Shown here piece after piece: positions 8,262 through 58,418 of a stretch of 64,000 nucleotides of DNA (position 1 is its first letter; each line of letters starts with the position of its first letter). The notes below the pieces were generated by a model. It saw only the letters and a program-made list of their open reading frames with translations, did no database searches and was not told the origin of the DNA. A program made the translations under genes and the position numbers. The stretch lies in the IMG/VR virus record IMGVR_UViG_3300043425_001539, positions 62,001 to 126,000 of that record, one strand, 5' to 3'.

Positions 8262-8498
8262 TTAAGAATTTGTCTTTATCCATGCTTTAATTGCATCTTC
8301 AGCAGCCTTTCGTAATTTTTCTGTGTCTGCAGGACTAAAATCACCAGATTTTATATCCGAGAAAGAATTAGCAACACTTTCCCAAAAAGCATCAAGAGCA
8401 TCTTCGGCTACTTGACTAATTTTTTGCGAGCTGTAATTAATGCCTTCATCTAATGAGTCCTGATTTAAAAAGTTTTTAAATGTTGTAAAATGTTTCAT
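8262..8498 (-). CDS. Small acidic protein with CTS-like leader
   Basis: 78 aa, MKHFTTFKNFLNQDSLDE; overlaps the upstream stop by 4 nt. Confidence 0.65.
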   Translation of the reverse strand: MKHFTTFKNFLNQDSLDEGINYSSQKISQVAEDALDAFWESVANSFSDIKSGDFSPADTEKLRKAAEDAIKAWIKTNS

Positions 8499-9076
8499 TG
8501 TTTTATGTATTTTTTTAGTTCATCATAATATTTATGCAATTCTTTTGGCATTAATTCATTAAACAAAGCTTTGTCATCATTTCTTAACGCCTGCCTAACT
8601 TTTGTTCCACTTGGTCCATCTCCTTCTCTTGCATCAACCAATCTAACAGAAAAATTAGCATCAACTGGTGTATCAGTTTTAGGACCTGTTATGTATTCAA
8701 CCTGTCTCTGATAATCCTTCATGCGGTCAGCGCCTGCGCCTAATCCTAAAGGTTCATATCCCAATTCTCTGATGTATTGAACCATTAAAGGAATCACAGT
8801 TTTTTTACCTGTAGGATATATTTGAAAATCTTTAATAAAAGAATTGTTACGAACAACATCTCTAGCCATTTTTTGAAGTAAAGTATCAGGAAAAGGCGAT
8901 TCTTCTTTTGCCGATAATATTTGTAATGCAACAACAGGTTTTCCGAAAATTTCTGAAGTTCTCTTTAAGGCGGCTAAATGACCCTTATGAAAAGGCTGAA
9001 ATCTACCAGGAAAAAATACTACCTCATTATTTGAGTTTTCGTTTATAAATGATTCAAATGTTTGAACGTGTCTCAT
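8495..9076 (-). CDS. HIGH-motif nucleotidyltransferase (cytidyltransferase-like/NMNAT-like) with CTS-like leader
   Basis: FPGRFQPFHKGH (HxGH), GAGADR and SGTKVR (KMSKS-equivalent). Confidence 0.85.
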   Translation of the reverse strand: MRHVQTFESFINENSNNEVVFFPGRFQPFHKGHLAALKRTSEIFGKPVVALQILSAKEESPFPDTLLQKMARDVVRNNSFIKDFQIYPTGKKTVIPLMVQYIRELGYEPLGLGAGADRMKDYQRQVEYITGPKTDTPVDANFSVRLVDAREGDGPSGTKVRQALRNDDKALFNELMPKELHKYYDELKKYIKQ

Positions 9077-11244: not shown

Positions 11245-11838
11245 TTAGAAGTATGTTTGTTCAAAGAAAAGTAATTCAAACGGATTTGACGGATTGACTA
11301 ACTCAAGCGCGTTTAAATAGTCTGAATATTCTTCAACTTCGCCATTTTGGATATCAACGTATTGTTGTATGAAATTAAAGGTAGCAGGATCTAAGCTAAC
11401 CAAAAACTTTTGATTTTCGGAATACGCATTTAATAAGGTTTCCTCAATCATATAAGCTTTGTTAATAATATCAACTAAACCCGAAAAATTAATTGTGGTA
11501 TGTACTTGCGGAATAACAGGTAAAGCATTCCATTGAGTAATGTAATCTTGTAAACCTTTTGCGTGACCCAATTCGCCTTCCGCTTCTTTGTTAAAAAAAT
11601 CAGCAGCCTTTTTATAATTTGCATTTTTACACCAGTTTGCGGCATTTCTGTAAAAGAAATATGCTGTATATTCATCGCCCAATCTTTCATTTAATAATTG
11701 TTCAACTTCAGGCAAAAGTTTTTTAGGTTTAATAGGTAAAACTGTTGAAGACATACCTATAGAGTGAAAAGATTCGTTAACGCCTGAATCCGCGGGTTTT
11801 TTAGATTTTGAACTTCTAAAAGATGAAAAATTTTCCAT
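11245..11838 (-). CDS. Non-heme ferritin (FtnA-like) with N-terminal extension
   Basis: Ferroxidase-like residues in GDEYTAYFFY, EAEGELGHA, YMIEE and DIQNGEVEEY, spaced as in bacterial ferritins. Confidence 0.85.
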   Translation of the reverse strand: MENFSSFRSSKSKKPADSGVNESFHSIGMSSTVLPIKPKKLLPEVEQLLNERLGDEYTAYFFYRNAANWCKNANYKKAADFFNKEAEGELGHAKGLQDYITQWNALPVIPQVHTTINFSGLVDIINKAYMIEETLLNAYSENQKFLVSLDPATFNFIQQYVDIQNGEVEEYSDYLNALELVNPSNPFELLFFEQTYF

Positions 11839-11878: not shown

Positions 11879-12163
11879 TTAATATATTAAGTTTTCCCAG
11901 TTAAACCCTTCACCAAGAAATTCATCATTAAACTTTGTTGAACTTAAAAGATTTCCTTGACTGTCGTATATGTTCCACATAATTACGCCATGTTCATTGG
12001 TGATTTCAATTTTTCTTTCTCCATATTCGGAAACATATGTGGTTGATGCTACATCAGTTGCGTCGTTATATTTCCACCCTAAACTTTTTAGGTCAAGAAC
12101 AAGATCTTGCCATTCAGTATCGGATTCATTAATAAATGTTTTAAAACTATTAATATAATGCAT
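11879..12163 (-). CDS. Hypothetical protein with CTS-like leader
   Basis: Start moved to ATG 12163 (MHYINSFKTFINES), 1 nt after the upstream stop. Confidence 0.6.
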   Translation of the reverse strand: MHYINSFKTFINESDTEWQDLVLDLKSLGWKYNDATDVASTTYVSEYGERKIEITNEHGVIMWNIYDSQGNLLSSTKFNDEFLGEGFNWENLIY

Positions 12164-12164
12164 A

Positions 12165-12638
12165 CTATTTGTATTTTTTAATCCAATTTTCAAATACTGT
12201 AACAGGAGTCCTGTGCGCCATATTTTCGTAATGAAAAACATTGTTACCATTTCCCATTATTTGCAACCATTGCACTGTTTGAAAAGGTTTAATAACTTGA
12301 TCATTTAAACCCAAAATAATAGTATTGGTTACCTTTTTACCTCCTTTGGGATCAGGCGAAATGTTAACATGTATGCTACGATTATGCAAAGCTGGATTAA
12401 ATAATAAAGTAGGAATATTGGTTTTTGTTGAAATGCAATACGATATCCATCCGCCCATTGAAGACCCAATCAAAAGATCAATCTTTTTTTCTTTAATTTC
12501 TGATATAATTTTATCATAATTAATATTACTTTGGTAGTTCATAGGCGGATCATACACATAATCAAAATATTTGCGCAAAATATCATTTTTCTCTGTGTAA
12601 GGATCGGATTCTAATCCGTGAAAATATGCAACTTTCAT
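12165..12638 (-). CDS. YqiA/YcfP-like alpha/beta hydrolase
   Basis: YFHGLES, LLIGSSMGG (GxSxG), LLFNPAL, Asp in LNDQV and His in MAHR. Confidence 0.85.
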   Translation of the reverse strand: MKVAYFHGLESDPYTEKNDILRKYFDYVYDPPMNYQSNINYDKIISEIKEKKIDLLIGSSMGGWISYCISTKTNIPTLLFNPALHNRSIHVNISPDPKGGKKVTNTIILGLNDQVIKPFQTVQWLQIMGNGNNVFHYENMAHRTPVTVFENWIKKYK

Positions 12639-12643
12639 AATAA

Positions 12644-13237
12644 TTATTTTTTTGGTCTGCCTAACATAATTTTATCGTGAACATGCCCTCCAATCGTTCT
12701 GCTATACCATCCATCACCTGAAGCATTATTTTTGGTTCCTATCCAGTTAATTGGTTTACCTAAAATTTTGGCAACCAATTCAGCATCATCAACAACAGGA
12801 ACGTTATATTTATTCATTAAAATTTCCGCAATTTTGCCCGAAACTTCAATGTAATGTCCTAATTTTTTAAGCTCAGTGCCACGCATCTCTAAATACTTTC
12901 TTTTGGATGCGGCATCGCCGTCGTGTCCTACTCCGGAATATTTTATGCCATGCTTTGTCTTTTCTCCAAAAATAATAATATCAAAGTTATTATCATTATG
13001 AATATCAACCCCTTCCCAATAATTCCAATCAGGATCAGAAAAAACATCTTTAGGCGTTTTTACTTTAACGTGTCCTCCTATCTCAGCATATGCAATGGAA
13101 ATTAATTCATAAAATTCATCAGCCAATTCAGGATGTTTTTTAGGATCAAATGTTATAGCTTTATTTCTAACAGGATTAAAAATTTCTCCTGAAGATTTTT
13201 CATTTAAAAAGCTTTCAAATGTTTGAACATATCTCAT
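12644..13237 (-). CDS. Conserved hypothetical protein with CTS-like leader
   Basis: MRYVQTFESFLNEK leader; 197 aa alpha/beta; no firm family assignment. Confidence 0.6.
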   Translation of the reverse strand: MRYVQTFESFLNEKSSGEIFNPVRNKAITFDPKKHPELADEFYELISIAYAEIGGHVKVKTPKDVFSDPDWNYWEGVDIHNDNNFDIIIFGEKTKHGIKYSGVGHDGDAASKRKYLEMRGTELKKLGHYIEVSGKIAEILMNKYNVPVVDDAELVAKILGKPINWIGTKNNASGDGWYSRTIGGHVHDKIMLGRPKK

Positions 13238-13248
13238 TTTTTTAACAT

Positions 13249-14988
13249 TTATTTATTATATACAAGAATAGAACGAATTTGATGAAGAGCCGCAAAAATT
13301 CCTGTAAATTTATATAATTTTCCTTTGTATAAAAAAGTTATACCTTCGGTAGGCACAATTGATTCTAATCCGCCGGCCGCCGCAACTCTTTCCAATTCAT
13401 ATTCCATTTTTTTAATTGCGTCTTCTCCGCCTTCCTTGCGGATTTTAGCAATAACACTATCAATTTCTTTTTTCATTTCTTCAGCTGCTTTAGTTGGATT
13501 TGCTGATAGAAACGAAGAAACATTTTTCATTACTTCGGTGCCTAATTCCAAAAATATTGATTCAAGCGGAAGATATACTCTTTTTTTTAATTCTTTTTCG
13601 CGAGTCTTTTCTAAATTAATAAACCATTCGGAAACGTTTACTGCTAAATTCTTTTTAATATTAGCAACTGTAAATGACTTATCTATGCCTGCTATCCTCT
13701 TTCCAAGCGCATCTAAATATTCATCAGGTATATCAATATTATCTCTTTTAGCAAGATCCTGTAGCATCCTTTTTGCATTGCCTAAAGCGTATTCTTCAAC
13801 GCTCGAAGAAAGATTAGTACCGCTTTCTTTCATTATTTTATTTAATAAAGAATAGTAGTATGCTTCCCTTGATTTGGTATTAGGCAAAGGTTGTAATGAA
13901 ATATCTTGAGGTCCTCTTACATAAAACATTTCTTGCGCAGCAGCATTTGCATCAGCAATTAATTTACCTAAATCTCTGCCAGCCTGTTTATCTTCGCCAA
14001 TAGGGTTTCCATTTTCATCATATTCAATAACTCCATGAAATACCAACATATTTTGTCCATAAGGTACAGTATTTTGTGTAACTGGAGTTATAATTTCAAC
14101 GCTTGCAAATTTTCTTCCGTTTGCAAAATATTTTTCTTTGATGGCATTGCTTAACGATCCTACAGAAGAATTCAAGTCTTTCATTGCGGCAACAAACGCA
14201 ATTTCTATGTCGCCTCTTCCCGCAAACATATTGGCAATTCCTTTTATTGTCAAAGAATCTTGCCCAAAATTTTTAATATGACTTTTATTACGAGCTGCTC
14301 TAATTTCTCCGTCCTTCCATGATATTGATAGCTGCTGGCCGTCTGTGTTATGAACCAATATGCCATTAGCAAAATATCTATGATTATTACCTACTGTTAA
14401 ATCATAACATTTTTCGGTAGATACAATTTTACGAATTGATTTTACTTTTGATCTTTTGCTTAAATTTTCGGTATCCCGCAAATCTTTTTTCCAGACAGTT
14501 AAAACTTCATCACCTTCTTTTATTTCGTCAGCTCTTAGGTCAAACCCGTTAACATAAATTCTATGATTCGGCGTAGTTCTAATAATTTGTCCGTCTTCGG
14601 TTTCTATTTCAATCCATTCTGTTGCTTCTTCATTTTCAACCCAATCCATAATTGGTTGATATGAAATTTCTCCTAATTCATTGGATGTTAAAATATCATC
14701 TTCAATTTTTGATTCTACTAAATCTTTAATTGAAATTAATCCTTTTGATTTTAAAGAAACGATAGTATCTCCGGACAAACATTTCTCTTGTGTAAAATTT
14801 TCAGGTCCAAAAGAGCCATTCACCGCAGCACTTATCATATCCTTTATATCCTGCATTGATAAATCAATATCCTCAAAAGGATGCGAGAGGTGCCCGTAAG
14901 CACCTCCTTCATTTATTTTATCATTAACATTAAAGTTTGCTATACGGCTTTCTTGAATAAGAAATTCTTTATATTTTAAAAAAGTCAT
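13249..14988 (-). CDS. Ligase-like (KxDG) nucleotidyltransferase-fold protein containing a mini-intein; CTS-like leader
   Basis: After intein removal it reads GGAYGHLSHPFED...FTQEK-TDGQQLSISWKDGEIRAARNK, with ASVEII and LVFHG as further ligase-like motifs; 434 aa when spliced. Confidence 0.75.
   Translation of the reverse strand: MTFLKYKEFLIQESRIANFNVNDKINEGGAYGHLSHPFEDIDLSMQDIKDMISAAVNGSFGPENFTQEKCLSGDTIVSLKSKGLISIKDLVESKIEDDILTSNELGEISYQPIMDWVENEEATEWIEIETEDGQIIRTTPNHRIYVNGFDLRADEIKEGDEVLTVWKKDLRDTENLSKRSKVKSIRKIVSTEKCYDLTVGNNHRYFANGILVHNTDGQQLSISWKDGEIRAARNKSHIKNFGQDSLTIKGIANMFAGRGDIEIAFVAAMKDLNSSVGSLSNAIKEKYFANGRKFASVEIITPVTQNTVPYGQNMLVFHGVIEYDENGNPIGEDKQAGRDLGKLIADANAAAQEMFYVRGPQDISLQPLPNTKSREAYYYSLLNKIMKESGTNLSSSVEEYALGNAKRMLQDLAKRDNIDIPDEYLDALGKRIAGIDKSFTVANIKKNLAVNVSEWFINLEKTREKELKKRVYLPLESIFLELGTEVMKNVSSFLSANPTKAAEEMKKEIDSVIAKIRKEGGEDAIKKMEYELERVAAAGGLESIVPTEGITFLYKGKLYKFTGIFAALHQIRSILVYNK
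14347..14781 (-). mobile_element. Mini-intein, 145 aa, no homing endonuclease
   Basis: Block A CLSGDT, block B TTPNH, block F CYDLTV, block G YFANGILVHN followed by Thr as the +1 nucleophile. Confidence 0.92.
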
Positions 14989-15002
14989 TAGATTTTGTTT
15001 TT

Positions 15003-15686
15003 TTATCCAAGTCCTGCTGTCAAAATTCCTACTGCAGCGCCTAAATCGCCTTTAGCTTTTTTAAGAATACCATCAATTGTTTTTTCAGCTTTATTTTCAT
15101 CATAATCATTTTTATGCGCCTTCTTTAGAAGGTTTTGTGCATATTCTTTAAATTCTTCCTCGGTTTTAATTTTTGCTTCATTCAAGAATAAACCATACAA
15201 AAATTCAGCTTCGTCTATTACTAACTCTAAGTCTCTATCTTTATTTGCAATTAATTTGTTTAACTCTTTTTCAAGTTCTTTTTTCTTGGCGGTAAGAGCT
15301 TTTAATGTATTAAGTACTTTATCTTTTTCAGCGCCTGTTGCAGTTTTCCAAACTTTAGCAAGTTCAGCCATTTCTTTAGTTACTTTGCCCCATTCGTCAT
15401 GCACCTTTTCGATTGATTTAGCCTCATACATTTTAGCAGATTCTTTAACGCCGTGTTTTTCAATATCTTTTTCCCCCGCTTCGGTTGCTCCTTTGCCTTT
15501 ATCCCAATCGGTTTTTAAATCATTAAAAAACTCTTTTTTCTTTGCGTCGTCCAAATCAGCTGGTGATTTTGCTCCATATTTTGCTAATTTAGCGCCAAAA
15601 TAATCACGCCAATTTTTTTGCAAATCTGACAAAGCTTTTTCCTCTGCTTCGCGTATAAGTGGTGTATAAACCGATAGTTTTTTCAT
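15003..15686 (-). CDS. Lys/Glu-rich helical protein, probable prohead core/internal protein
   Basis: Highly charged; three helical modules separated by hydrophobic-x-E sites. Confidence 0.55.
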   Translation of the reverse strand: MKKLSVYTPLIREAEEKALSDLQKNWRDYFGAKLAKYGAKSPADLDDAKKKEFFNDLKTDWDKGKGATEAGEKDIEKHGVKESAKMYEAKSIEKVHDEWGKVTKEMAELAKVWKTATGAEKDKVLNTLKALTAKKKELEKELNKLIANKDRDLELVIDEAEFLYGLFLNEAKIKTEEEFKEYAQNLLKKAHKNDYDENKAEKTIDGILKKAKGDLGAAVGILTAGLG

Positions 15687-15704
15687 TCTTTTGGATTTTA
15701 TTTT

Positions 15705-16073
15705 TTATGCAGTTGTTCCGTAATGATTATCTTCATTTCCGAAATATTTTTTGGTTTCTTCTGTTAATGTTTTAATTGTTTCCTTAACTGTTTCGCCGAC
15801 AGAATCAGCAAGCATTTCAACAATATCTGAACTTATTCGCAATTTTTTATCAAGAGCATACACATACGTGGAAATACATTTATTAATTGTATTTCTTGCT
15901 TGTTTGTCATCGGTTTTGGCAAAATATACATCAAGTAATTTCCGCCTAAACCCTTCAACCGTTTCATCAGAATGGTTAACCGAAACTTCTTGTGGGCTAT
16001 TAGTTTTCATAACCCGACCAGACAAGTTTGTGCCTTTTTTTCCTTCAGCCAAAAAATCTTTATATAGTAACAT
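15705..16073 (-). CDS. Hypothetical protein with CTS-like leader
   Basis: MLLYKDFLAEG, very close to the T4 IPII/IPIII leader MKTYQEFIAE. Confidence 0.65.
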   Translation of the reverse strand: MLLYKDFLAEGKKGTNLSGRVMKTNSPQEVSVNHSDETVEGFRRKLLDVYFAKTDDKQARNTINKCISTYVYALDKKLRISSDIVEMLADSVGETVKETIKTLTEETKKYFGNEDNHYGTTA

Positions 16074-16076
16074 AAT

Positions 16077-16085
16077 TTATATATC
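16077..16085 (-). promoter_or_regulatory. Candidate late-promoter motif GATATATAA
   Basis: 3 nt upstream of the ATG at 16073, at the boundary between replication genes and the leader-bearing block. Confidence 0.55.
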
Positions 16086-16101
16086 ATATGCGTTTATGAT
16101 A

Positions 16102-17619
16102 TTAAATGTTAATTCTGTATTCTTTATATGGAAATCCTTGCTGTTTGTATATCTTCATTCTTTCTTCACCATGCTTTAATAAATAATTCTTATTTCCTCC
16201 GTTCATTGAAAAGTCATCTACAAAATCTATAATGTTAACTCTTTCCTTGCCGTCTTTTAAACGCATACCTCGCCCAATAGATTGCCTAACAATTTTTTCG
16301 GATTTATAGGATTCCACAAAAAACACATTATGAATATTATTAATACTAATTCCTGTTGAAAAAGTACCAAAACTTGCAATTAGTATTTTATCATCGCCTT
16401 CTTCCATTCGATTAATATAATCATCTCGCAAATTAATAGGAGTGTTGCCGTCTACATAAAATATCGTCTTATCACTTGTATATTCTCGCAAATAGTCATA
16501 AATTTGTTTTCCATATTGGTCTTTAACATTTTGAAATAATACTAAGCTATTTTTTGTTGATTTGGAAATAAAATCACACACAAATAAAAATCTAGGGCGA
16601 TTTTCAACAACCAATCTCTTTTCTATTTCTAATAGTTTGCTACCGTCAATTTCCGCTTTTCTGCTTCTTAGCTCTTCTAATTTTTCCCTGGAATCGGCAT
16701 CTAAATAATTGAGCTTTATTACTTTAATAAAAATTTTTGTGGCATAAGAATTTGCTTGCAAAAATGCGGCAGATATATTGTTTACCTGCGGACCTAAATA
16801 TGCTTGAATTGTTAATGCTTCGGTGCTACCATTTTGCAACATAGTACCCGACAACCCAAATGCATATTTGGTATTTAAACAATTTCCAATAATTTTTTTG
16901 ATGGAACTTGCTTGAGTGTGATGCGCTTCATCAACACAAATAGTAAAAATATCATCAAACCATTCTTTTTCACGTTTAACTAAAGTTTGATATGTTCCTA
17001 TAATAACATCAACGTCTTTTTTAGTTTTATCTGTTCCTCCGTGAACCATTTGTAATAAATAACGTAATTTACCATTATTATAAACTTCCCAATCCTCGTT
17101 GGTTTGAATAATTAGATTGGTGTTAGGAACAACCATTAAAAACTTTCCAGCTTTTTTACGGTCATATAAATAGGCAAAAATCATAAAAATGATTAGAGTT
17201 TTACCAGCCGAAGTGGCAATTTCAGATATGCTTCTACGGTATTTTAAAATTGGAATGCAAGCATCTATCTGATAATCTCTGGGTTTAATTTTTGGATGAT
17301 CGGAAAAAAACTCGTTTACCCAGCTTCTAAAATCTTCTTCATCAAAATTATAATCAATAACTTCTTCAATTCCTTCGATATCAAGTTTAAATTCGTATGT
17401 TTTACAAACATTACTTAATTCATTCCACAATCCAATAGGTATTCTTTGATATTTATCAATAAATGTTATGTACCCATCCCAAAGTTTTTTCTTTACGAGT
17501 GGGTGAAACCTCCAATTAGTGATTCTTTTTTTGAAAGAATATTGTATTTGTTCTAACTCTGTACTATTGCCTTCAATAATCTGTATAAATCTTCCATCAG
17601 GAGTTACTCGTGCTTTCAT
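16102..17619 (-). CDS. uvsW: UvsW-like SF2 DNA helicase
   Basis: PRDYQ, ATSAGKT, VDEAH, GLSGT, ASFGTFSTGISI, RQSIGRGMR motifs in T4 UvsW arrangement. Confidence 0.92.
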   Translation of the reverse strand: MKARVTPDGRFIQIIEGNSTELEQIQYSFKKRITNWRFHPLVKKKLWDGYITFIDKYQRIPIGLWNELSNVCKTYEFKLDIEGIEEVIDYNFDEEDFRSWVNEFFSDHPKIKPRDYQIDACIPILKYRRSISEIATSAGKTLIIFMIFAYLYDRKKAGKFLMVVPNTNLIIQTNEDWEVYNNGKLRYLLQMVHGGTDKTKKDVDVIIGTYQTLVKREKEWFDDIFTICVDEAHHTQASSIKKIIGNCLNTKYAFGLSGTMLQNGSTEALTIQAYLGPQVNNISAAFLQANSYATKIFIKVIKLNYLDADSREKLEELRSRKAEIDGSKLLEIEKRLVVENRPRFLFVCDFISKSTKNSLVLFQNVKDQYGKQIYDYLREYTSDKTIFYVDGNTPINLRDDYINRMEEGDDKILIASFGTFSTGISINNIHNVFFVESYKSEKIVRQSIGRGMRLKDGKERVNIIDFVDDFSMNGGNKNYLLKHGEERMKIYKQQGFPYKEYRINI

Positions 17620-18388
17620 TATCTTTATTTATTTCATAATAATATTCTTTAAACGGTAAAGAGTTCCAATTTGCATGAAAATCTTTACTTAATTCAATAA
17701 ATTCTTTTTTCTTTTTGTCCAATTCTTCGCCTGCAAGAACTTCAAGTTGCATTCCTCCTGGGTGTGATATCCAAACTTGAACTTCATCAATAGGTTTTTT
17801 AAAAAGTTCTTCAAAAGAAAGGGCATATGCAGCACCTTGTTTTTTATATTTATTCATCACATCAATCCCACGTATTCCTGAAGCACTTTTAAAATCTGTG
17901 ATAATTCTTTTGCCGTTAATATGTTCAAATCCAAAATCGGCTGTTCCAGCAAATAAATTTTGCAAAGACCACAAAAACTTTTCAGTAAAAATTACTCTTT
18001 TGATGTTGTCAAATACATTTTCATGTATAAAATTATAAAATAAATCTCTGCCGTAAGAAATTTTATCTTCAGCCATCCCATCTTCTCTTAAATCAGCAGG
18101 TGTCTTCTTTTGCGTGTATAATAAACACATATCAGAATTACCTCCATTTTTGATACATATCATATAATTCTCCAAAAACCGATGCATAGCCGTACCTCTG
18201 CCTGCTGCACGTTCTCCTATTTCTTGAAGCTTTTCTTTTCCGATTGCATCTTCTAAATCTTGAAGATACTTTGAAGGTTCATATGAAAGAATAGTGGTAA
18301 CAGAAGGCATAAATATCGGCTCTGCATCATTTTCTTTATAAACATAAACTCTCCCGTGTGGTGTTTCAAATCTTTTAACTTTTGACAT
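17597..18388 (-). CDS. PD-(D/E)xK exonuclease (phage type)
   Basis: PSVTTIL, RGTAMH, FAGTAD, ITDFKS and Q-x-x-AY motifs. Confidence 0.85.
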   Translation of the reverse strand: MSKVKRFETPHGRVYVYKENDAEPIFMPSVTTILSYEPSKYLQDLEDAIGKEKLQEIGERAAGRGTAMHRFLENYMICIKNGGNSDMCLLYTQKKTPADLREDGMAEDKISYGRDLFYNFIHENVFDNIKRVIFTEKFLWSLQNLFAGTADFGFEHINGKRIITDFKSASGIRGIDVMNKYKKQGAAYALSFEELFKKPIDEVQVWISHPGGMQLEVLAGEELDKKKKEFIELSKDFHANWNSLPFKEYYYEINKDNESTSNS

Positions 18389-18860: not shown

Positions 18861-19008
18861 GTATTTCAGATTTAATAATTAACTTTTTCTTGACAGATGA
18901 TACTTGAATTTCAGAAAAATCAGGTTTTTCAAAATTAAAAGAAAACTCGACATTTCCTTTAAACCTCACTTCTTCGTCTAAACCTATTTCATTAGATCCA
19001 GTATGCAT
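18817..19008 (-). CDS. Possible small 63-aa protein bridging primase and uvsY
   Basis: ATG 19008 (MHTGSNEIGLDEEVRFKGNVEFSFNFEKPDFSE...) fills a 130-nt gap and overlaps both neighbours. Confidence 0.4.
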   Translation of the reverse strand: MHTGSNEIGLDEEVRFKGNVEFSFNFEKPDFSEIQVSSVKKKLIIKSEIRDTRKHKHKSSNLF

Positions 19009-20113
19009 CGTATTTATCGTTGGAAAAATAGTTTGCCAATCTTGGTATTGAGATGTTTTTTCTTTTTGCCAAGACGACAAGGTCTGTGAGGTCCATTTTT
19101 TTATTTGTCGGTTCATCGATATTTGCTTCTTTAAAAAATTTCTTCCATAAAAATACAGGCTTGCCTTCTTTTAGGCGTTTAATTGAGGCTTCTTTACCCG
19201 CTTTATCAAAATCATACAAATATCTTAAAGATGATAAATCAATCGGAACATCAATATTTGACGAACAAGTAGCTATCGAATTTTTATATAAAAAAGAATC
19301 TAAAGGTCCTTCAAACACCGTAATAGGCAATGATAAATCCACATTAAGTAAACCAAAAATAGTTGACATTGGATCAACTTCTTCTACTTCATGTGTTACA
19401 GTTTTTCCAAAAATTTCGTATATTTTGCTTAATCTAAATGTCATATACTTAGGATATGTTTTAAAATTTCTAATCTGAAAACCTAAAACTTGATTGGTAT
19501 TAGGAATCAGATTAAAAATGTAAAGTTGTTCTTTTTCTTTACTCCAAGAAAAAATATCCATGTTTGGCTGCAACCTTTTAATTAAATAAGTTGCTATTGG
19601 AGATTTATCAATTCTTTTTAATTTAAACTTGTCCTCAATTATATTCCTATCAACAGCTAAAGTTTTTAATTTTTCTATGTCAAATAAGTAAGAAGGGTCT
19701 AATTGAATAATTTCCTTTTTTGTACTTTCCTCAGCATCTTTGATGTAAAGCATCTCATCAACGCTAAACACATCTTTTTTGAAGTCCTTTAAGAATTTAT
19801 AAACATCAGTGTATTTTCCACAATTATAACACTTAAAATATAATTTATCAATATAAATATTTCCGCGTTTTTTATGTGTATCAACGCTACTGTCTCCACA
19901 ATAAGGACATGCAAAATTTAAACGCCCAGCTTTATTATAAATTATTCTCTTTTCACTGTGTGCATGGTTGCTGTTTAAAATTTCCTGTAAAGAAACTTTA
20001 ATCTTTTCAATAATTTGTTGAGGATTAACAGCAACTGAATCTTTATCATAAGAAAAAGAGAATGAGGTTTTACCCCCATTCTCTCCGTTTTCATTTGAAT
20101 TAAAGTGATGCAT
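18992..20113 (-). CDS. gp61: DNA primase (T4 gp61-like)
   Basis: Zn finger CPYCGDS...CYNCG, Toprim VFEGPLDS and YDFD. Start moved to ATG 20113 because the longer ORF lies inside gp32. Confidence 0.88.
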   Translation of the reverse strand: MHHFNSNENGENGGKTSFSFSYDKDSVAVNPQQIIEKIKVSLQEILNSNHAHSEKRIIYNKAGRLNFACPYCGDSSVDTHKKRGNIYIDKLYFKCYNCGKYTDVYKFLKDFKKDVFSVDEMLYIKDAEESTKKEIIQLDPSYLFDIEKLKTLAVDRNIIEDKFKLKRIDKSPIATYLIKRLQPNMDIFSWSKEKEQLYIFNLIPNTNQVLGFQIRNFKTYPKYMTFRLSKIYEIFGKTVTHEVEEVDPMSTIFGLLNVDLSLPITVFEGPLDSFLYKNSIATCSSNIDVPIDLSSLRYLYDFDKAGKEASIKRLKEGKPVFLWKKFFKEANIDEPTNKKMDLTDLVVLAKRKNISIPRLANYFSNDKYDAYWI

Positions 20114-21035
20114 AAAGGTCATCATCAAAAGAATTTGGGTCAAAATCATCAGAATCATCGAGTATTGATGATGTTTCAACAGCCGCAGGTTTTGGTTTAG
20201 TCGGCGCGGACGGCAAAACAAAATCATCATTGCTTTCAGAGATTGCTGATGTAGTTTTTCGATTGTTTTTTTCCACGGATTCAATCATACGGCCACCTGG
20301 GACAGTGTTTCTGATAACTTGATTGACAAAATCTTCGGTTGCTTGATCCCAATCTTGATAATCATAAGCACTTAGATCAGGAGATTCGTCAAGATATGAT
20401 TTAATTTTATTAAAGCATTCTTGAGTTTTTTCCATTTTTTCTCCATCTATGGTAAGCGGCATTTTTTCATCCAAAAAACGACAATTATCATAGTTATTAT
20501 AACCTGCTACTTGCGTAATGTGAACAAGAAATGGCTTTCCTTCAAAAAGATCAAAAGGAATGTGTGGTTTTCCAAATTCTGGCTTCATTTCAGCCTGTAA
20601 TTTGTTGTAAATTTTGACTCCATAAGGCCACACCATAATTTTACCAACCATTTCAGGATTGTTGTCATCTTTGATGATTTGAACCAATGAAGCAAATCGT
20701 TGCCTGCGAGAAAAATTTTCGGCTAATTTTTGTTCAGCAACAGAATCAGACTTTTTAAATTTCCAATAAAAATCTTGGATAATTGACTTTTTACCAACAG
20801 TGGAAGGGCAGTCAACCATTTTTCCTTCATTATTAGCTGGATCAACCAACCAACATGACCATTTTTTCATTACCGATTTTTTTGCATCCTTATGCCAAGG
20901 AATAAATCGAACTACTGCTTTGTAAACTCCATCTTTACCAGATTTTGAATCAGGTTTAAAAATTAAAGATTGTTTACGTTCGGGCTCTTTGAAGTCATCG
21001 AGCGAAAGATTAAAGATGTCATTAAGATTCTCCAT
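20100..21035 (-). CDS. gp32: Single-stranded DNA-binding protein (T4 gp32-like)
   Basis: YKAVVRFIP, IIKDDNNPEMVGKIMVWPYGVKIY, FDLFEGKPF, GYNNYD and an acidic C-tail. Confidence 0.9.
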   Translation of the reverse strand: MENLNDIFNLSLDDFKEPERKQSLIFKPDSKSGKDGVYKAVVRFIPWHKDAKKSVMKKWSCWLVDPANNEGKMVDCPSTVGKKSIIQDFYWKFKKSDSVAEQKLAENFSRRQRFASLVQIIKDDNNPEMVGKIMVWPYGVKIYNKLQAEMKPEFGKPHIPFDLFEGKPFLVHITQVAGYNNYDNCRFLDEKMPLTIDGEKMEKTQECFNKIKSYLDESPDLSAYDYQDWDQATEDFVNQVIRNTVPGGRMIESVEKNNRKTTSAISESNDDFVLPSAPTKPKPAAVETSSILDDSDDFDPNSFDDDLYASL

Positions 21036-26053: not shown

Positions 26054-29000
26054 TTATTCATCTTCAGCAGGAAATTCGGGAGGAGTTGTCCAACTGCGAG
26101 TGTAATTGTTAGAATACCTAATAATTGACTGTCCGCTTACGGTCAAGTATTTATAATATGTACCTGTGCCTGTGCCTGTTATCGATGATTCGTTAAACAT
26201 TGCATCTCTTAACGGTATATCATGGTGCATAATCGGATCGTCAAACATAATTTCTAATGCAAATGAATTACGGTTAACTGAACCTGATTCTGTAGGAACA
26301 ATACCTCCATTATCCGCATAATAATTACCAAATTGAGGAACAATTCTCCAAGCACAAGAACGGTTTCTGCTAAATGCACGGTTGCCCATAAGTTGGAATG
26401 TTGCACCTAAATAAGTTTGAAAATATGCTTGACGTAAATCAGCAGCACCATCTATTTCATTTACCATATTAACGGACTGGGAATACACAAATTTGTTTGA
26501 TGCCTTTTTTGTGTCAATCCATGTGTAAGTTTTTGCAGTTCCTTCGATCCCTAATGATGTTGAGGCAGATTGTCTAGGCTGCCATAATATTGATGATTGG
26601 TCATTTGCAAAATAATAACTCATACCGTAATTGATAACATTGCCATTCCAACGGTTGAAATAATTTGAAGCTGTTGCGCCTGACGATTGATTTAACATAT
26701 AAAACGAATCGCCAGTATTAGATGTTGATAAAGTGCCTGCGGAAGTATCATCGCCAACAACAGCCCATCCAGAGTTCCAATTTTTATAAGAACTCCAATT
26801 TGCAAAACCTAAACCATTTCCAAATAAATCATATAAAAACAAATTGCGCTGATAGTGATCATCGGTCAAATCGGTAGCAGATGGGAAGTATTTTAATCTG
26901 ATAAATTGTGTCCATCTTGGTGAACCTCTGTCAATTAATTCAGATTGGTTACCTGATACCGAAGAATCACCAACTTCACCGGGCGCAATTCCAGTGTTTA
27001 GGTTGGGATTTCTAACAGCAACCGTAACATTAAAATCAATTAAAGCAAACTCACTGTTAATACGTTTGAATCTAAATTCGGATGCTTTATTTTCATAGTT
27101 TGGATCACCCCATCCTCCATCATAATTGCCTGTTGAGCCATCAAAAATATTATAAAATTTATCAATATTTCGTATCATGGTGGATGCTGTTCCACCACCT
27201 GTCATTCCCGTAGTATCATTACCATCTGGCCAACTAATATAACTTCTTCCATTGGGCATCGACGGTCCAATTGCATACATTTTAGCATATTGGTCACTTG
27301 TAAACAATTCTTTATAATCGCTTGCAAGAGGACCGGTATAACCTGCTGTAGGCCACACATCATCAAGCATTCTGCGATTTGTGTATATTACATGCGAAGG
27401 CCAATATCCTGTGCCTCCATTATTTCCTATTACGTCTGTTCCGCCTGAAACCACGCCGTACGTGGTAGTTCCATAATTTGATGTTGCACCTGTTACCGCA
27501 GCAACTCCTACAACTCCAGCTGTTGCAGTATATCCATAAATAAATTCCAATGTAACAACTTCCTCTAATAAGAAATTGTCCATATTTACCGTAACATTAT
27601 CAAACCCGCTATTCTTTTCTTTTTGCCCATAATGATCGGTAAATACCATAAACGTTCCGCCTGTATTATCCGTTTTAGGAATCCAATATTCGCGCAAAGA
27701 AGATTCATTTTGCGCTGATGCAACAACAGTATTGACTTTGCGATAAGCTGATGATGAAGTTATTGGTCTTGATGTTGAAGTATCACCCGGGATTTTTGTT
27801 GCGTCAGCCTCAAGGAATGTAAATACCAATTTTGGTGATTGCTGTCTTGCTTCTTTAACAGCAACAGCATCGCCCGAATTTTCATTCGCACCTGATAATC
27901 CAAGTCCTTCACCGGCAACAAAATTGTTTAGTCTTATGTTTCCTAATATCAAAGGGTCTTGTTCAAATGTAAGACGGAATCCCATTCCTGAACCTATGGT
28001 GCCGTTCCATGTAACATTTTCGCCATCCCAAGCTGCGGCAACTGCGCCTACGGGTGCTTCATATGATCCAACATAAGAATCAAGTGGAGCACCACTTTCA
28101 AATTCTGTTGGGTGAGGAATCATTATTGCTTCCAACCAAGTAGAAGGAGGAGTACCGCCGGTTATTCCAAAGCCGCCAGTTTGTCCAGCAAAAAATATAG
28201 TACAAGATGTTACTCTTCCTTCCCAATCAGTTTGTAAATTTAATGCATTAACATATGACGTATTTGGCGCTTGATTATACGGACTTTTTAATACTATATA
28301 CTTTAATGCATCAGCATTGGTAATGTTTATTGTTGAAGAAGGCGGATATCCCCAACCTCCGTTCTGTAAAGTACGTCCTGGTCTACCGTGTAATTTTTCT
28401 GCGGCAAATTCTGCTCTGAAAGTATCAGAAATGGTTGCGTTTGAATTTATTAATGCTGCATTACTTGTGGAAGAATTTTCAATAAAGCTTCCTGAAACAC
28501 CTGTATATAATACTAATCCATAAGCGCCAGACGCGCTATAATATGCTATGTTGTGATTGGGCGATGCGCCAGCCGTTGAAGGCGAAGCAGTTAATCCGTT
28601 TGCAACCGCTGGTCTTGGAACATAGTTTAAGAAGCCAGTTGTGATATTTCTTTCGGTTGAAGCATATGCATTTTCATCAAAACCAGCGGCGTTACCAAAT
28701 CCAACACTGCCATCTTTTTTGACTATAAGCTTGATATTGTTTAGTACATCTCGCGTACTCAATCGTTGTTCCCAAAATCTATAAGATTTTCCGCCATTAC
28801 GTCCAGACTTTATTGATGATATTGCAAGATCACCATCACCGTTTGTTAAAATTACTGAGCCTCCATTTTCAGTGCCTCCATTTGTGCCAGATATCCAAGT
28901 AATTGTTTCATCTTTAACATCTCCTTTATTCATCAAGTCTCTAAACAGATTAAATCCTTGATAATGAACAGGTTTAAATAAAGCATTCTCTATTCCTCCG

Positions 29001-31774
29001 TGTCTGAATGCATTATTAAATGCTCCGGTAGAAGCAGTAATACCAGACATATCATCTTTGTAAAAAGCTGCATACAAAGAACCGCTGTCTCCTGTATTAC
29101 CGTAAGGTATAATATGTCTAGTTGGTGATAGAATTTCTTTGAAAGGAAAGTTTGCGGCATTTGTTGAATATGCACCTAAACTTCCTGTACCTACTCCTGC
29201 CGTTGGTGATCCTCCTAATGTTGTATATGGATATTCCAAAATACCCGTTGGATATAAATATGAATCTCCTATAAAATCGGTAATTACTTGCGTATTTGAA
29301 CGATAATTTGGCTGATAATAAGGATACGTTGATGATAAACTTCCTTGCGCGGCATAAGCATATCCAGCATATACTGCATCATTATCAGTTATTCCTCTAT
29401 CAGTTTCATTATACTTATTTTTCCCGTAAATATGAAAACGCGTTCTTGGCCACAAATTATGAACACCAAATCCTGTAATTGCTGTTCCCGTATTGCTGAC
29501 TTCAGTTGCATTTGCATTTAATGGATGTAAAGCAACTTGAAACTCATTTCGATAATTATCAAGAATTTCACCGATATTTGTTCCTGTTGCTGCTGGCTGA
29601 ACGCCTAATCTAAATGAATCAAATCCTTCATTTGCATACCATCCTTCTCTTCTAAAACCTATTCTAAAATTACCTGTTGCCGAAGTAATAGGAGATGTTC
29701 CAGATCCGTAAGGGTTTGCACTTTCATATGAACTTTCAACAGTTCTTCCCAAATAAAAATCAATAAAACCTTGATTATTTGCAGAAGACGTTGATGAAGT
29801 AAATGCTGCAACTTTGCTGAGTTGTGTATTAATGTCTAACTTATTTGCAATATTGCCAAATTGCATCCACACGTTTGTAGGATCATTTCCATCATTAGAA
29901 AGAACGGATGGATTGATATGTATATGCATTTTAGCAAGAGGCTCCCAGACGCCGTTGTCGTCACTTGTAAATGTACCTATACCTATATTTCTAAAAGGAG
30001 ATACATATAATGAAGGCAAACTTCTTTGTTCATTTATAGAAGCGTCAATATCTTGACTTGACACGGCATGATCAGCACCCGCAACCGAACCGTCTAATTT
30101 ATACTGTGAAGTATAGAATATAAGTTCACTTAAAAAATAAGTATCATCATTTGTTGTGTTCCAAGTACGCTTTCCTCTTTCAGCCATACCTGCAAGACGA
30201 GCGTATCCTTCTGATAAAGGATCCGATGAATTAGTTGACCAAGAAGAAACATCATCAAATCTAAATCCTGAACCATACCAAGAACGTCTTGTTTGGTTGC
30301 CTAATAAAGGTGTATCATTGAATAGACCGCTGCTTGCAATTCCTGCGCCGTAGTCTATAAAATTTGCAAGAGAAACTTGCCCACCTACATTTTTGCCGTT
30401 TGCTGCGGATATAAATCCTTGAAACACTCTATAAGCGTATGGGCTTGAACTTTCGCGATATGTTTCATCACCAGAATTAACATAATCTGATGATAAAACT
30501 AAATCTTGAGGCAAAGCACATATTATTTGATTTGAAGTTGTTAATGATTTAACATCAAGAACTAGTTCAGCCAAATTTATTGTTCTTGCATTGGAAATTC
30601 CAGCGCCAGCAGACATTGCATCGTAATCTTCAGGAGACGGAGCCAATCTTGTTGACAATAAAAACATTGATTTTGTTTCCTTTGGAAAGATTGAACCTGC
30701 TGTTGAACCTGCGGTTATACCAGCGCCACCACCGTACGGAGTTGCTAATGTAGCGGTATATTGATAAAGTCCTAATGTACTAAAACGTTCTTCGCCAATT
30801 CCGCTATCTGGCCTTAATTCTGACCAAAAGAAAAGAGGAGTATAATCATCAAGAGGTGTGTCATACATCGGTTTAACCCAATATCCATCACCTGACAAAG
30901 GAACGATTCCTACTCTTGGGTAGGACGTGTCCTCTGCATTTGCAGGTTGATCCAATAAAGTGGTAGACCTTGCATTAATTATACTATGATATGGTAAAGA
31001 ATCTAAACTAAATTTAAACAGTAAACGATCAACCCCTGCATTCCATCTACCAGGTTGAGGAAACGGCAATGCAGCATCTCCGTAATCTTGCCCCCAACTT
31101 TCAATCGATGGTGTATTATAATCTTGAGATCCTGTTGCTCCTGAATTGCCTGCACTTACCCAAATTGTTCCATATTTGCTGTTAAAACGTGCATTTGGTA
31201 TCTTAAGAGGAGAAGAAGATGTATCAAATGGTCCTGTTGCATAAGGAGGGTTTGTAAAATATGTAGAATAATCATATGTCCAAACATTACTCAAATCTTG
31301 TGTTTCAGGTTGAGGGTAAAAATACCACCCAGGCCCTCCGTAATATCCTGTGCCAGTTGGCGGATATGTTGGTCCAATATTTGCATATTGCCCTTCCGAA
31401 TCAGCGGATGTTAAATACATCCAATAACCACGATTATAGTGATCTATATAAATATCTCCTTGTCCACCTGTTCCTATAGTTATGTCTAAATAATCAAGAG
31501 ATGCAATAGGCCAAGGACCTGCTATTGATGATGGACCAGTTGTTCCGCTAACTCCATCAGCAAAAGGAATCATATATGCACTTAATCCAGTAGGTCCAAC
31601 TGGACCTTGCGCCCCCGTTTCTCCTTTTCTACCCGGTAAACCCGGTAATCCTTGATTACCTCGGATTCCTTGAGGCCCTCCACCCGCGAGTGATATTACT
31701 TGAAAGTTATTATTAAGTTTAGCAATTATTGTTGATAAACTGTCGCTTTCAAGAAGATTTTGTAATGTTATCAT
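26054..31774 (-). CDS. Giant fibre/baseplate-attached virion protein with a short collagen-like segment
   Basis: 1906 aa, Gly/Ser/Thr-rich; (Gxy)n run GPQGIRGNQGLPGLPGRKGETGAQGPVGPTG near the N-terminus. Confidence 0.7.
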   Translation of the reverse strand: MITLQNLLESDSLSTIIAKLNNNFQVISLAGGGPQGIRGNQGLPGLPGRKGETGAQGPVGPTGLSAYMIPFADGVSGTTGPSSIAGPWPIASLDYLDITIGTGGQGDIYIDHYNRGYWMYLTSADSEGQYANIGPTYPPTGTGYYGGPGWYFYPQPETQDLSNVWTYDYSTYFTNPPYATGPFDTSSSPLKIPNARFNSKYGTIWVSAGNSGATGSQDYNTPSIESWGQDYGDAALPFPQPGRWNAGVDRLLFKFSLDSLPYHSIINARSTTLLDQPANAEDTSYPRVGIVPLSGDGYWVKPMYDTPLDDYTPLFFWSELRPDSGIGEERFSTLGLYQYTATLATPYGGGAGITAGSTAGSIFPKETKSMFLLSTRLAPSPEDYDAMSAGAGISNARTINLAELVLDVKSLTTSNQIICALPQDLVLSSDYVNSGDETYRESSSPYAYRVFQGFISAANGKNVGGQVSLANFIDYGAGIASSGLFNDTPLLGNQTRRSWYGSGFRFDDVSSWSTNSSDPLSEGYARLAGMAERGKRTWNTTNDDTYFLSELIFYTSQYKLDGSVAGADHAVSSQDIDASINEQRSLPSLYVSPFRNIGIGTFTSDDNGVWEPLAKMHIHINPSVLSNDGNDPTNVWMQFGNIANKLDINTQLSKVAAFTSSTSSANNQGFIDFYLGRTVESSYESANPYGSGTSPITSATGNFRIGFRREGWYANEGFDSFRLGVQPAATGTNIGEILDNYRNEFQVALHPLNANATEVSNTGTAITGFGVHNLWPRTRFHIYGKNKYNETDRGITDNDAVYAGYAYAAQGSLSSTYPYYQPNYRSNTQVITDFIGDSYLYPTGILEYPYTTLGGSPTAGVGTGSLGAYSTNAANFPFKEILSPTRHIIPYGNTGDSGSLYAAFYKDDMSGITASTGAFNNAFRHGGIENALFKPVHYQGFNLFRDLMNKGDVKDETITWISGTNGGTENGGSVILTNGDGDLAISSIKSGRNGGKSYRFWEQRLSTRDVLNNIKLIVKKDGSVGFGNAAGFDENAYASTERNITTGFLNYVPRPAVANGLTASPSTAGASPNHNIAYYSASGAYGLVLYTGVSGSFIENSSTSNAALINSNATISDTFRAEFAAEKLHGRPGRTLQNGGWGYPPSSTINITNADALKYIVLKSPYNQAPNTSYVNALNLQTDWEGRVTSCTIFFAGQTGGFGITGGTPPSTWLEAIMIPHPTEFESGAPLDSYVGSYEAPVGAVAAAWDGENVTWNGTIGSGMGFRLTFEQDPLILGNIRLNNFVAGEGLGLSGANENSGDAVAVKEARQQSPKLVFTFLEADATKIPGDTSTSRPITSSSAYRKVNTVVASAQNESSLREYWIPKTDNTGGTFMVFTDHYGQKEKNSGFDNVTVNMDNFLLEEVVTLEFIYGYTATAGVVGVAAVTGATSNYGTTTYGVVSGGTDVIGNNGGTGYWPSHVIYTNRRMLDDVWPTAGYTGPLASDYKELFTSDQYAKMYAIGPSMPNGRSYISWPDGNDTTGMTGGGTASTMIRNIDKFYNIFDGSTGNYDGGWGDPNYENKASEFRFKRINSEFALIDFNVTVAVRNPNLNTGIAPGEVGDSSVSGNQSELIDRGSPRWTQFIRLKYFPSATDLTDDHYQRNLFLYDLFGNGLGFANWSSYKNWNSGWAVVGDDTSAGTLSTSNTGDSFYMLNQSSGATASNYFNRWNGNVINYGMSYYFANDQSSILWQPRQSASTSLGIEGTAKTYTWIDTKKASNKFVYSQSVNMVNEIDGAADLRQAYFQTYLGATFQLMGNRAFSRNRSCAWRIVPQFGNYYADNGGIVPTESGSVNRNSFALEIMFDDPIMHHDIPLRDAMFNESSITGTGTGTYYKYLTVSGQSIIRYSNNYTRSWTTPPEFPAEDE

Positions 31775-39280: not shown

Positions 39281-39293
39281 TATACATTAATTT

Positions 39294-58101: not shown

Positions 58102-58418
58102 TAAGATATGTATTTGTATTTTTTATCTACTGCATAATTAATCGATTTTCTGATTTGCTGAATTGTATCAACTATATAAGTTAAAAGTTTATTATATTGA
58201 GTCACTACCGCATCAACATCTTCATTTGCAAGAATATAATTAGACAAAGATTTTTTCATAAGATTAGGTCTCCAGTCATACCCTACATTTTTTAAATCAT
58301 CTTGACGATGGATCATTGCTTCATAAAAGCTTTGTCTTGTTAAATACGCACCCATTTTTATTTCTTCATTGGGATCTTCGTAAGTTTTTTCAATTATATT
58401 TACTTCTCTATTAGCCAT
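58101..58418 (-). CDS. Small baseplate-associated protein
   Basis: 105 aa, translationally coupled between gp6-like and gp7-like genes. Confidence 0.55.
   Translation of the reverse strand: MANREVNIIEKTYEDPNEEIKMGAYLTRQSFYEAMIHRQDDLKNVGYDWRPNLMKKSLSNYILANEDVDAVVTQYNKLLTYIVDTIQQIRKSINYAVDKKYKYIS

Follow-up and report, generated by a model that had tools for sequence, protein, structure and literature searches.

In the 64,000-nucleotide stretch of DNA analysed here (the window, bases 62001-126000 of the 238,475-base IMG/VR virus record IMGVR_UViG_3300043425_001539), a single open reading frame (ORF) of 579 aa (positions 13249-14988) encodes an RNA-ligase-like nucleotidyltransferase whose KxDG motif is interrupted by a mini-intein. 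Positions are those of the window unless record bases are named, and every window feature given here lies on the minus strand. The N-extein (residues 1-69; 14782-14988) carries the family-conserved EGGAYGHLSHPFED motif and ends ...GPENFTQEK, with E68-K69 as its last residues and K69 as the lysine of motif I, KxDG. It is followed by the class-1 mini-intein (precursor residues 70-214, CLSGDTIVSL...FANGILVHN; 14347-14781), whose 145-aa translation is stop-free, and by the C-extein (residues 215-579; 13249-14346, coding 13252-14346), 365 aa plus the stop codon, starting TDGQQLSISWKDGEIRAARNK (TDGQQLS...). The C-extein opens with T+1, at once the splicing nucleophile and the x of KxDG, followed by D and G, and it holds the remaining ligase-like motifs together with an inserted helical domain.

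Profile searches recognized the insert as an intein along nearly its entire length. Pfam Intein_splicing (PF14890) matched with E 2.3e-15 (57.2 bits, cut-off 35.8), the alignment spanning intein residues 9-145 on positions 2-155 of the 155-position profile; Pfam Hint and PT-HINT matched as well, and the NCBIfam pair TIGR01445/TIGR01443 (intein_Nterm, E 1.4e-13; intein_Cterm, E 3.2e-6) scored over both cut-offs. The class-1 catalytic set is complete (Cys1, T70/H73, D127, H144-N145 and Thr+1). Block B, T70-P-N-H73 (TxxH; 14563-14574), aligned with TPDH of NrdJ-1 and TKDH of Npu DnaE, the closest solved inteins by sequence (NrdJ-1, 8ubs, E 1.8e-9), and blocks F and G, placed by translation and by alignment to solved inteins, read C125-Y-D127-LTV ... 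H134 ... FANGILV-H144-N145 (14347-14409). The usual endonuclease site between blocks B and F holds just the nine-residue linker KKDLRDTEN (intein residues 98-106; 14464-14490), which lies at the break point between the N-terminal (IntN) and C-terminal (IntC) intein parts of split relatives: the IntN of P0125 ends ...ELVVFS at its stop codon, and the IntC of P0019 starts MNKSYKLSKIK.... A length of 145 aa with the profile fully covered leaves no space for an endonuclease domain, and the term mini-intein, already proposed in an earlier, sequence-only reading of this DNA, holds. The boundaries drawn in that reading are likewise codon-exact, as judged by the 145-residue translation, the flanks ...FTQEK and TDGQQLS..., and the collinearity of intein-free homologues. 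A bacterial intein-like or Hedgehog-type Hint domain was also considered, and was ruled out by C1, HN and T+1 together with the same homologues.

Identical N-extein, intein and C-extein sequences were found on a second IMG/VR contig (L015, IMGVR_UViG_3300043429_001189, 136 kb), which by its sequence is the same phage or a near-identical one from a separate assembly. The window intein is therefore no assembly artefact.

Alleles of the insertion site and intein mobility

A word search with the C-extein yielded 373 relatives, nearly all of them 420-450 aa long and collinear with the N-extein plus the C-extein; 120 were listed, and 119 of these were classified at the motif. The intein-free homologue P0008 (434 aa, 81% identical over the C-extein) reads ...FVQEKTDGQQLSITWKDGEIRAARNK; SEKLDGYALS stands at this place in a further intein-free ORF of 421 aa (L003), from an uncultured phage of 462 kb. 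Since the collinear homologues have an uninterrupted EKTDG or EKLDG, taking out the 145 residues restores a conserved EK-x-DG, and codon-exact boundaries of this kind cannot be chance. The KxDG motif is indeed split directly behind the lysine, as first read from the sequence, with EK/.../TDG in the window (slashes mark splice junctions) against the contiguous motif of the homologues. Among 275 family proteins the motif was intact in 213; 12 started with IntC and three had a contiguous intein, and these intein-bearing forms all end HN/TDG.

Split alleles occur at exactly this codon. Eleven of the 119 close relatives (P0012, P0014, P0016, P0019, P0045, P0055, P0072, P0090, P0095, P0102 and P0104) are 404-408 aa long and consist of Met and ~40 residues of the intein C-terminal part, then HN/TDG and the C-extein; a more distant representative, P0211, likewise starts with IntC. 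At such fractured loci the order is an ORF of N-extein plus IntN (167-172 aa), an ORF of 275-280 aa, and an ORF of IntC plus C-extein, the last overlapping the middle one by 41 bases, and this order was found in three independent sources (L004, L005, L006) and on the P0095 contig. The IntN part is 99 aa long with a Hint/Intein_splicing match and the IntC part ~40 aa, and the window intein corresponds to IntN, the nine-residue linker and IntC in succession. Other contiguous inteins at the site are those of P0006 (134 aa) and P0188 (139 aa, within a 1,245-aa fusion protein). The window copy is not fractured, being one ORF with no endonuclease gene nearby.

Position, kinship with DUF7487 ORFs and an EINGDYWH motif suggest that the middle ORF of the fractured loci encodes a homing endonuclease. 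The motif, borne by the representative P0126, is like that of Vsr-like nucleases. The nearest ESM-Atlas clusters of the middle ORF were viral DUF7487 proteins (score 0.95-0.96), lower-scoring clusters (0.87-0.88), which serve as leads only, being NUMOD3 and DUF559, and a DUF7487 relative of it in the same 238-kb record as the window matches the PHROG 'homing endonuclease'. A PDB sequence search with P0126 gave no match.

The distribution of the intein among relatives is scattered. A maximum-likelihood tree was built from 119 C-exteins, of which 106 were intein-free, 11 split and 2 contiguous; the intein state needs 12 changes on it, at least 9 of them forced by well-supported branches, and shuffled labels required 12.5 changes on average. 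Near-identical exteins were found in opposite states (P0055 versus P0040, and P0045 versus P0047). The record also bears further inteins in three other genes, outside the window, all at conserved motifs. This combination of scattered presence, intein-free close relatives and three other intein genes fits a selfish mobile element, and on this pattern the window intein acts like one selfish intein among several in a phage lineage rich in inteins.

Those three genes are as follows. The large subunit of ribonucleotide reductase is fractured (record bases 55406-58891; L008), a 376-aa ORF ending in IntN being followed by a 473-aa free-standing ORF and then by an ORF starting with IntC (MLKIKKTTKREPVYDITVAENKNFYANDILVHN/CSEIV...); an NrdB-like ORF lies just upstream of the fractured gene. 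A RecA/UvsX-like ATPase (record bases 36521-40913; L009, L012) has two inteins, the first contiguous and ending ...SSHN/TGKTF in the P-loop (GKT loop), the second split, with a 345-aa ORF between its halves that matches DUF7487 (E 2.6e-15) and the PHROG 'homing endonuclease'; upstream of this locus is a Vsr/DUF559-like ORF with a weak Vsr match (E 0.0023). An SbcC/Rad50-like ORF (record bases 31897-35133; L011), adjoined by an SbcD-like phosphoesterase ORF, carries a mini-intein near its N-terminus (...NNIVSHN/STLSD).

An RNA-ligase-like host family

The interrupted enzyme belongs to a very large phage family. Counted at 50% identity, 1,691 representatives were retrieved at E ≤ 1e-3 and 497 at E ≤ 1e-30, the shared module being ~410 aa long and often placed C-terminally in proteins of 600-1,900 aa. 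Among phage records, megablast with window positions 12000-18000 gave no match, and tblastn with the C-extein gave just three distant ones. In an alignment of 40 homologues with 34-77% identity to P0008, whose numbering is used here, K69, D71, G72, R88, F143, G146, E153, Y165, H173, G182, G338, E403, G404, F407, K415, G418 and F420 were invariant in 40/40, and an N-terminal EGGxYGHxxHPxED motif was nearly so. The x of KxDG was Thr in 28 of the 40 and Leu, Val or Ile in the remainder; it is Thr, the required nucleophile, in every intein-bearing allele. The window exteins keep every family-invariant residue.

For the fold we used an AlphaFold2 model of the intein-free homologue P0008, built on the 40-sequence alignment, rather than of the window's own spliced product (predicted local distance difference test score, pLDDT, 90.1; predicted template modelling score, pTM, 0.83). 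The top Foldseek matches in the PDB were all RNA ligases, among them 2vug (Pab1020-type, E 2.3e-4) and T4 Rnl1 (9do4, E 6.1e-4), with probabilities up to 0.99. Likewise, all 50 of the 50 entries listed by VIA-align belonged to the covalent nucleotidyltransferase superfamily (ligases or capping enzymes), led by the ligase domain of fungal Trl1 (6n0v; Z 9.4, 223 residues aligned, root-mean-square deviation (rmsd) 5.3), the Naegleria RNA ligase (Z 8.8), T4 Rnl1 (2c5u; Z 8.6, 186 aligned, rmsd 4.0), trypanosome REL1 (Z 8.4) and T4 Rnl2 (Z 8.2-8.3), with DNA ligases at Z 6.9 at most and capping enzymes at Z 5.5. The invariant residues fall in the motif order expected of these enzymes, I (K-x-D-G), Ia (R88), III (E153), IIIa (the H173 strand), IV (E403-G404) and V (K415), with E153, H173, E403-G404 and K415 on beta-strands of the model, motifs III to V being assigned from order and fold ranges rather than from residue-level superposition. 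Invariance, fold and motif position together point to K69 as the catalytic lysine. With RNA ligases first in the fold comparisons and the invariant motifs in order, the description of the host as ligase-like, which the sequence-only reading had offered, is now supported by fold and motifs, and an RNA ligase is the best reading of it.

The architecture of the module is distinctive. In the chain of the P0008 model, motif IIIa is separated from motifs IV/V by a helical domain of 167 residues (226-392), and the 233-residue nucleotidyltransferase domain of Rnl2 is matched over its residues 3-233 by model residues 29-425, ranges that fit a helical domain placed within the nucleotidyltransferase domain. 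Rnl1 and Trl1 have the helical domain after motif V, and this type of architecture, with contiguous motifs I-V and then a C-terminal helical domain, was not found in the P0008 model.

Sequence profiles gave weak matches to RNA ligases. Pfam RNA_ligase (PF09414) had sub-threshold matches in 5 of the 40 homologues (best E 0.0064), and in the one inspected, P0148, profile positions 2-33 lay over motif I (E 0.045); none reached the gathering threshold of PF09414 or of a curated ligase family, and the window exteins and P0008 gave no match at all. The nearest ESM-Atlas clusters (score 0.97) have DUF6267 (PF19782) in 21-24% of their members; hmmscan at E up to 1 found no DUF6267 match in the window protein, P0008 or the 40 homologues, and the literature search found no paper on 'DUF6267'.

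Domain fusions and gene linkage point to a role in RNA repair. Giant family members fuse the module to CTP_transf_like (a HIGH-type nucleotidyltransferase), an AAA_33/Zeta_toxin P-loop kinase, an HD phosphohydrolase and PolyA_pol, the latter comprising head and RNA-binding domain as in the CCA-adding type. Four such multidomain proteins ending in the ligase-like module (P0222, P0136, P0153 and P0170) look, from their predicted domains, like all-in-one RNA-repair polyproteins; P0222 (1,930 aa), for instance, reads CTP_transf_like, DUF5661, AAA_33 kinase, HD, PolyA_pol head with RNA-binding domain and then the ligase-like module. CTP_transf_like is also fused directly to the module in Microcystis phage Mel-JY01 and in an uncultured 484-kb phage; uncultured jumbo phages and many giant metagenomic proteins show fusions of the two. 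In the window, a gene for a cytidylyltransferase-like (HIGH-type) nucleotidyltransferase of 193 aa (8495-9076; Pfam CTP_transf_like E 1.9e-7, PHROG cytidyltransferase) lies ~4 kb downstream of the ligase-like gene on the same strand, a linkage repeated in relatives, and its product is a probable functional partner of the ligase-like enzyme. Kinase, phosphoesterase, CCA-adding enzyme and ligase make up the toolkit for the repair of cleaved tRNAs (jumbo-phage review, PMC7824862). On this evidence, the probable task of the host enzyme is RNA (tRNA) repair, carried out jointly with the HIGH-type nucleotidyltransferase.

The same evidence bears on whether the host might instead be another covalent nucleotidyltransferase, namely a DNA ligase, a guanylyltransferase of the capping type, or one passing a nucleoside monophosphate to a non-nucleic-acid acceptor in concert with the HIGH-type nucleotidyltransferase. 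Capping enzymes, too, usually have KTDG as motif I, the P0008 model shows no OB domain and is unusual in topology, with its helical domain placed within the nucleotidyltransferase domain, the module has a cytidylyltransferase-like enzyme as its constant partner instead of a Pnkp-type end-healing enzyme, and the thresholds of curated RNA-ligase families were not reached. We nevertheless consider this unlikely, because both structure comparisons (Foldseek and VIA-align) placed RNA ligases ahead of DNA ligases and of capping enzymes, P-loop polynucleotide-kinase-like, HD and CCA-adding-type domains occur fused to the module, and the sole weak Pfam matches common to several members are to RNA_ligase.

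Splicing, rival readings and known systems

Taken together, the locus is likely to hold a canonical selfish class-1 mini-intein in the KxDG of a phage enzyme with the fold of ATP-dependent RNA ligases, its splicing most probably being constitutive. In the precursor, an N-S acyl shift at Cys1 would be followed by transesterification onto the Thr+1 hydroxyl; with the help of His144, Asn145 would then cyclise, and an O-N shift would complete the joining of ...QEK to TDGQ... in a 434-aa enzyme with a contiguous KTDG. In the P0008 model, the insertion point falls in the hairpin between strands 67-69 and 73-80; with K69 and D71-G72 parted by a 145-residue domain, the precursor is most probably inactive before splicing. 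The window intein is probably competent to splice, and to do so autocatalytically. The spliced enzyme would then form lysyl-AMP at K69 and seal RNA ends with the HIGH-type nucleotidyltransferase, and the motif I position would reflect homing into a site highly conserved in DNA and protein, not regulation.

A number of points weigh against this reading. Scans of Pfam, NCBIfam and PHROG assigned no family to the N-extein, the C-extein or the intein-free homologues, and PDB sequence searches with a single sequence and with the 40-sequence profile gave no real match. With no curated threshold passed and no PDB match, the ligase assignment leans on a predicted fold with middling Z-scores and on motif logic. 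The same scans bear out the earlier impression of an unusual host, the family being uncharacterised. The position of the helical domain is unlike that in any characterised RNA ligase, and the nucleotide could be ATP, NAD+ or GTP. On the intein side, the nuclease tie of the middle ORF is weak (P0126 matched Pfam DUF7487 with E 0.0045 and REase_MTES_1575 with E 0.064), and AlphaFold2 on its single sequence gave no usable model (pLDDT 34.9). Inteins in general tolerate Thr+1 and Lys-1, which does not fix their effect on the window intein. Any intein with Cys1 is sensitive to oxidants and Zn in vitro, and a sporadic distribution is compatible with a splicing speed modulated by conditions.

It is very unlikely that the intein has decayed, with splicing lost and the gene either functionally dead or giving cleavage products alone. 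Mini-inteins that lack a homing endonuclease gene represent a late stage of the homing cycle, and the G+C content at third codon positions is lower in the intein (0.17) than in the exteins (0.22-0.25), as decay might have it; against this, the catalytic residues of blocks A, B, F and G and the +1 nucleophile are intact in a frame open over 579 codons, the identical allele is retained on the second contig, and the exteins retain all family-invariant residues.

Least credible of all is a conditional switch, in which the ligase-like enzyme, held inactive by its intein, would have to await a redox or metal signal for splicing. This was the suggestion of the sequence-only reading, which had envisaged redox- or metal-gated activation, and it can draw on the Cys1 nucleophile, on a second cysteine, C125, in block F near the active centre of HINT folds, and on a ferritin-like gene 1.4 kb downstream, which is coincidence at best. 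A precedent is intein 1 of Mycobacterium smegmatis DnaB, also inserted in the catalytic region of a nucleic-acid enzyme, in which oxidants and Zn can block the cysteine nucleophile, a C48-C118 disulfide and Zn on the nucleophile reversibly stopping splicing (PMC7360933). That intein, however, is class 3, with C118 as nucleophile and a required C48, whereas the window intein is class 1 and its second cysteine is unconserved. Of its two cysteines in all, C1 and C125, the latter corresponds to Arg in the closest contiguous relative, P0006, and in P0012, P0014, P0072 and P0102, and to Cys in P0019, P0090 and P0104. Moreover, the closest extein relatives (81% identity) are intein-free, intein state is spread over the extein tree as random labels would be, the same site bears split forms with a nuclease-like gene, which is the signature of homing, and the inteins in three other genes of this phage all sit at conserved motifs. 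No specific support for gating was seen. A conserved C1/C125 redox pair, considered as a separate candidate, was ruled out by the Arg at this position in close intein relatives.

Dassa et al. (2009, PMC2677866) described split inteins of fractured genes, NrdJ-1, gp41-1, IMPDH-1 and others, in phage metagenomes of marine and freshwater origin. The window system resembles these in that its closest solved intein by sequence, NrdJ-1, is a fractured-gene intein, in that relatives of the window gene are split at the same codon into N-extein plus IntN, a nuclease-like ORF, and IntC plus C-extein, and in its phage context with other fractured genes in the same genome. It differs in that the window copy is contiguous (cis-splicing), with no endonuclease gene nearby and Thr at +1, and in a host outside the eight enzyme types of that paper, whose unknown-function locus upstream of nrdB was not compared by sequence. 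Npu and Ssp DnaE and other class-1 mini-inteins share blocks A, B, F and G, a length of ~137-150 aa, Cys1 and the terminal His-Asn, and differ in host and insertion site, DnaE having Cys+1 where the window intein has Thr+1.

For the host, the nearest counterparts are T4 Rnl1, Trl1, Naegleria and Deinococcus Rnl5 and T4 Rnl2, with which it shares the predicted fold (Z 8.2-9.4), invariant K-x-D-G, the Arg behind motif I, the motif III Glu, motif IV E-G and the motif V Lys, an association with RNA end-healing and CCA-adding domains and, as in Rnl1 and Trl1, an additional all-helical domain. Unlike these ATP-dependent RNA ligases, to none of which it has a significant sequence match, the family has its helical domain (226-392) ahead of motifs IV/V and not after V, its own EGGxYGHxxHPxED motif and a HIGH-type partner, and its ligase activity is predicted. 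The sole RNA-ligase intein hosts in two surveys (PMC4760082; bioRxiv 10.1101/2025.01.02.630785) are RtcB proteins of bacteria, archaea and actinobacteriophages, which are likewise RNA-repair ligases interrupted by an intein, but of unrelated fold and mechanism (GTP, His-GMP, 3'-phosphate ends) compared with the lysine nucleotidyltransferase of the host. In the literature searched, no intein was described from an ATP-dependent RNA ligase or an Rnl-type lysine nucleotidyltransferase, nor any lying directly behind a motif I lysine. The sequence-only reading had allowed that a common, already known allele would count against it; the site does recur in metagenomes, and no description of it was found in the literature searched.

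There is precedent for inteins in nucleic-acid enzymes of phages, as there is for mini-inteins and for fractured genes; what is new here is the intein allele and the host family, the uncharacterised ligase-like family being the more novel part. We see an even chance that the exteins represent a clade of RNA-ligase-like phage enzymes, very large and so far undescribed, with an inserted helical domain, an N-terminal GHxxHP motif and an obligatory HIGH-type partner, often within giant kinase-HD-CCA-adding polyproteins, in which motif I is a recurrent homing site with intein-free, contiguous and split alleles among exteins 76-83% identical. If true, this would provide a new class of RNA-repair enzyme, a natural series on how inteins become split and a new Lys-1/Thr+1 split-intein pair, which could yield a new orthogonal split intein accepting Thr at +1. 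On the intein side, the window adds a further case of a mobile mini-intein in the catalytic motif of a phage nucleic-acid enzyme, and the alleles bear on the idea that fractured genes are intermediates in the combination of endonuclease and intein (Dassa et al. 2009, PMC2677866). On the host side, a very abundant, unannotated phage family now has an assignment as an RNA-ligase-like lysine nucleotidyltransferase working with a HIGH-type nucleotidyltransferase, its role probably being tRNA or RNA repair against host anticodon nucleases.

Gene neighbourhood

The ligase-like gene lies in a same-strand block with genes for a superfamily 2 (SF2) helicase (16102-17619), a primase-like protein with a CHC2 zinc-finger match (18992-20284, TTG start as listed) and a gp32-like single-stranded DNA-binding protein (20100-21035). 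No virion link was seen in this setting, and the earlier notion of a packaged enzyme finds no support there. Four giant ORFs lie further upstream, of 1,906 aa (26054-31774), 2,490 aa (31808-39280), 1,205 aa (39294-42911) and 2,154 aa (51637-58101). A PHROG scan of these four gave no functional match, three of them matching just PHROGs of unknown function, so that no virion module can be placed relative to the ligase-like gene. The primase-like ORF overlaps that of the gp32-like protein by 185 bases, and its listed start is probably too far upstream.

On the other side, a gene for a UPF0227 alpha/beta-hydrolase-like protein (12165-12638) lies just downstream of the ligase-like gene, and the ferritin-like gene (11245-11838; Pfam Ferritin E 3.2e-20) follows 1.4 kb downstream. 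A ferritin gene is also found downstream of the homologous gene on the P0095 contig.

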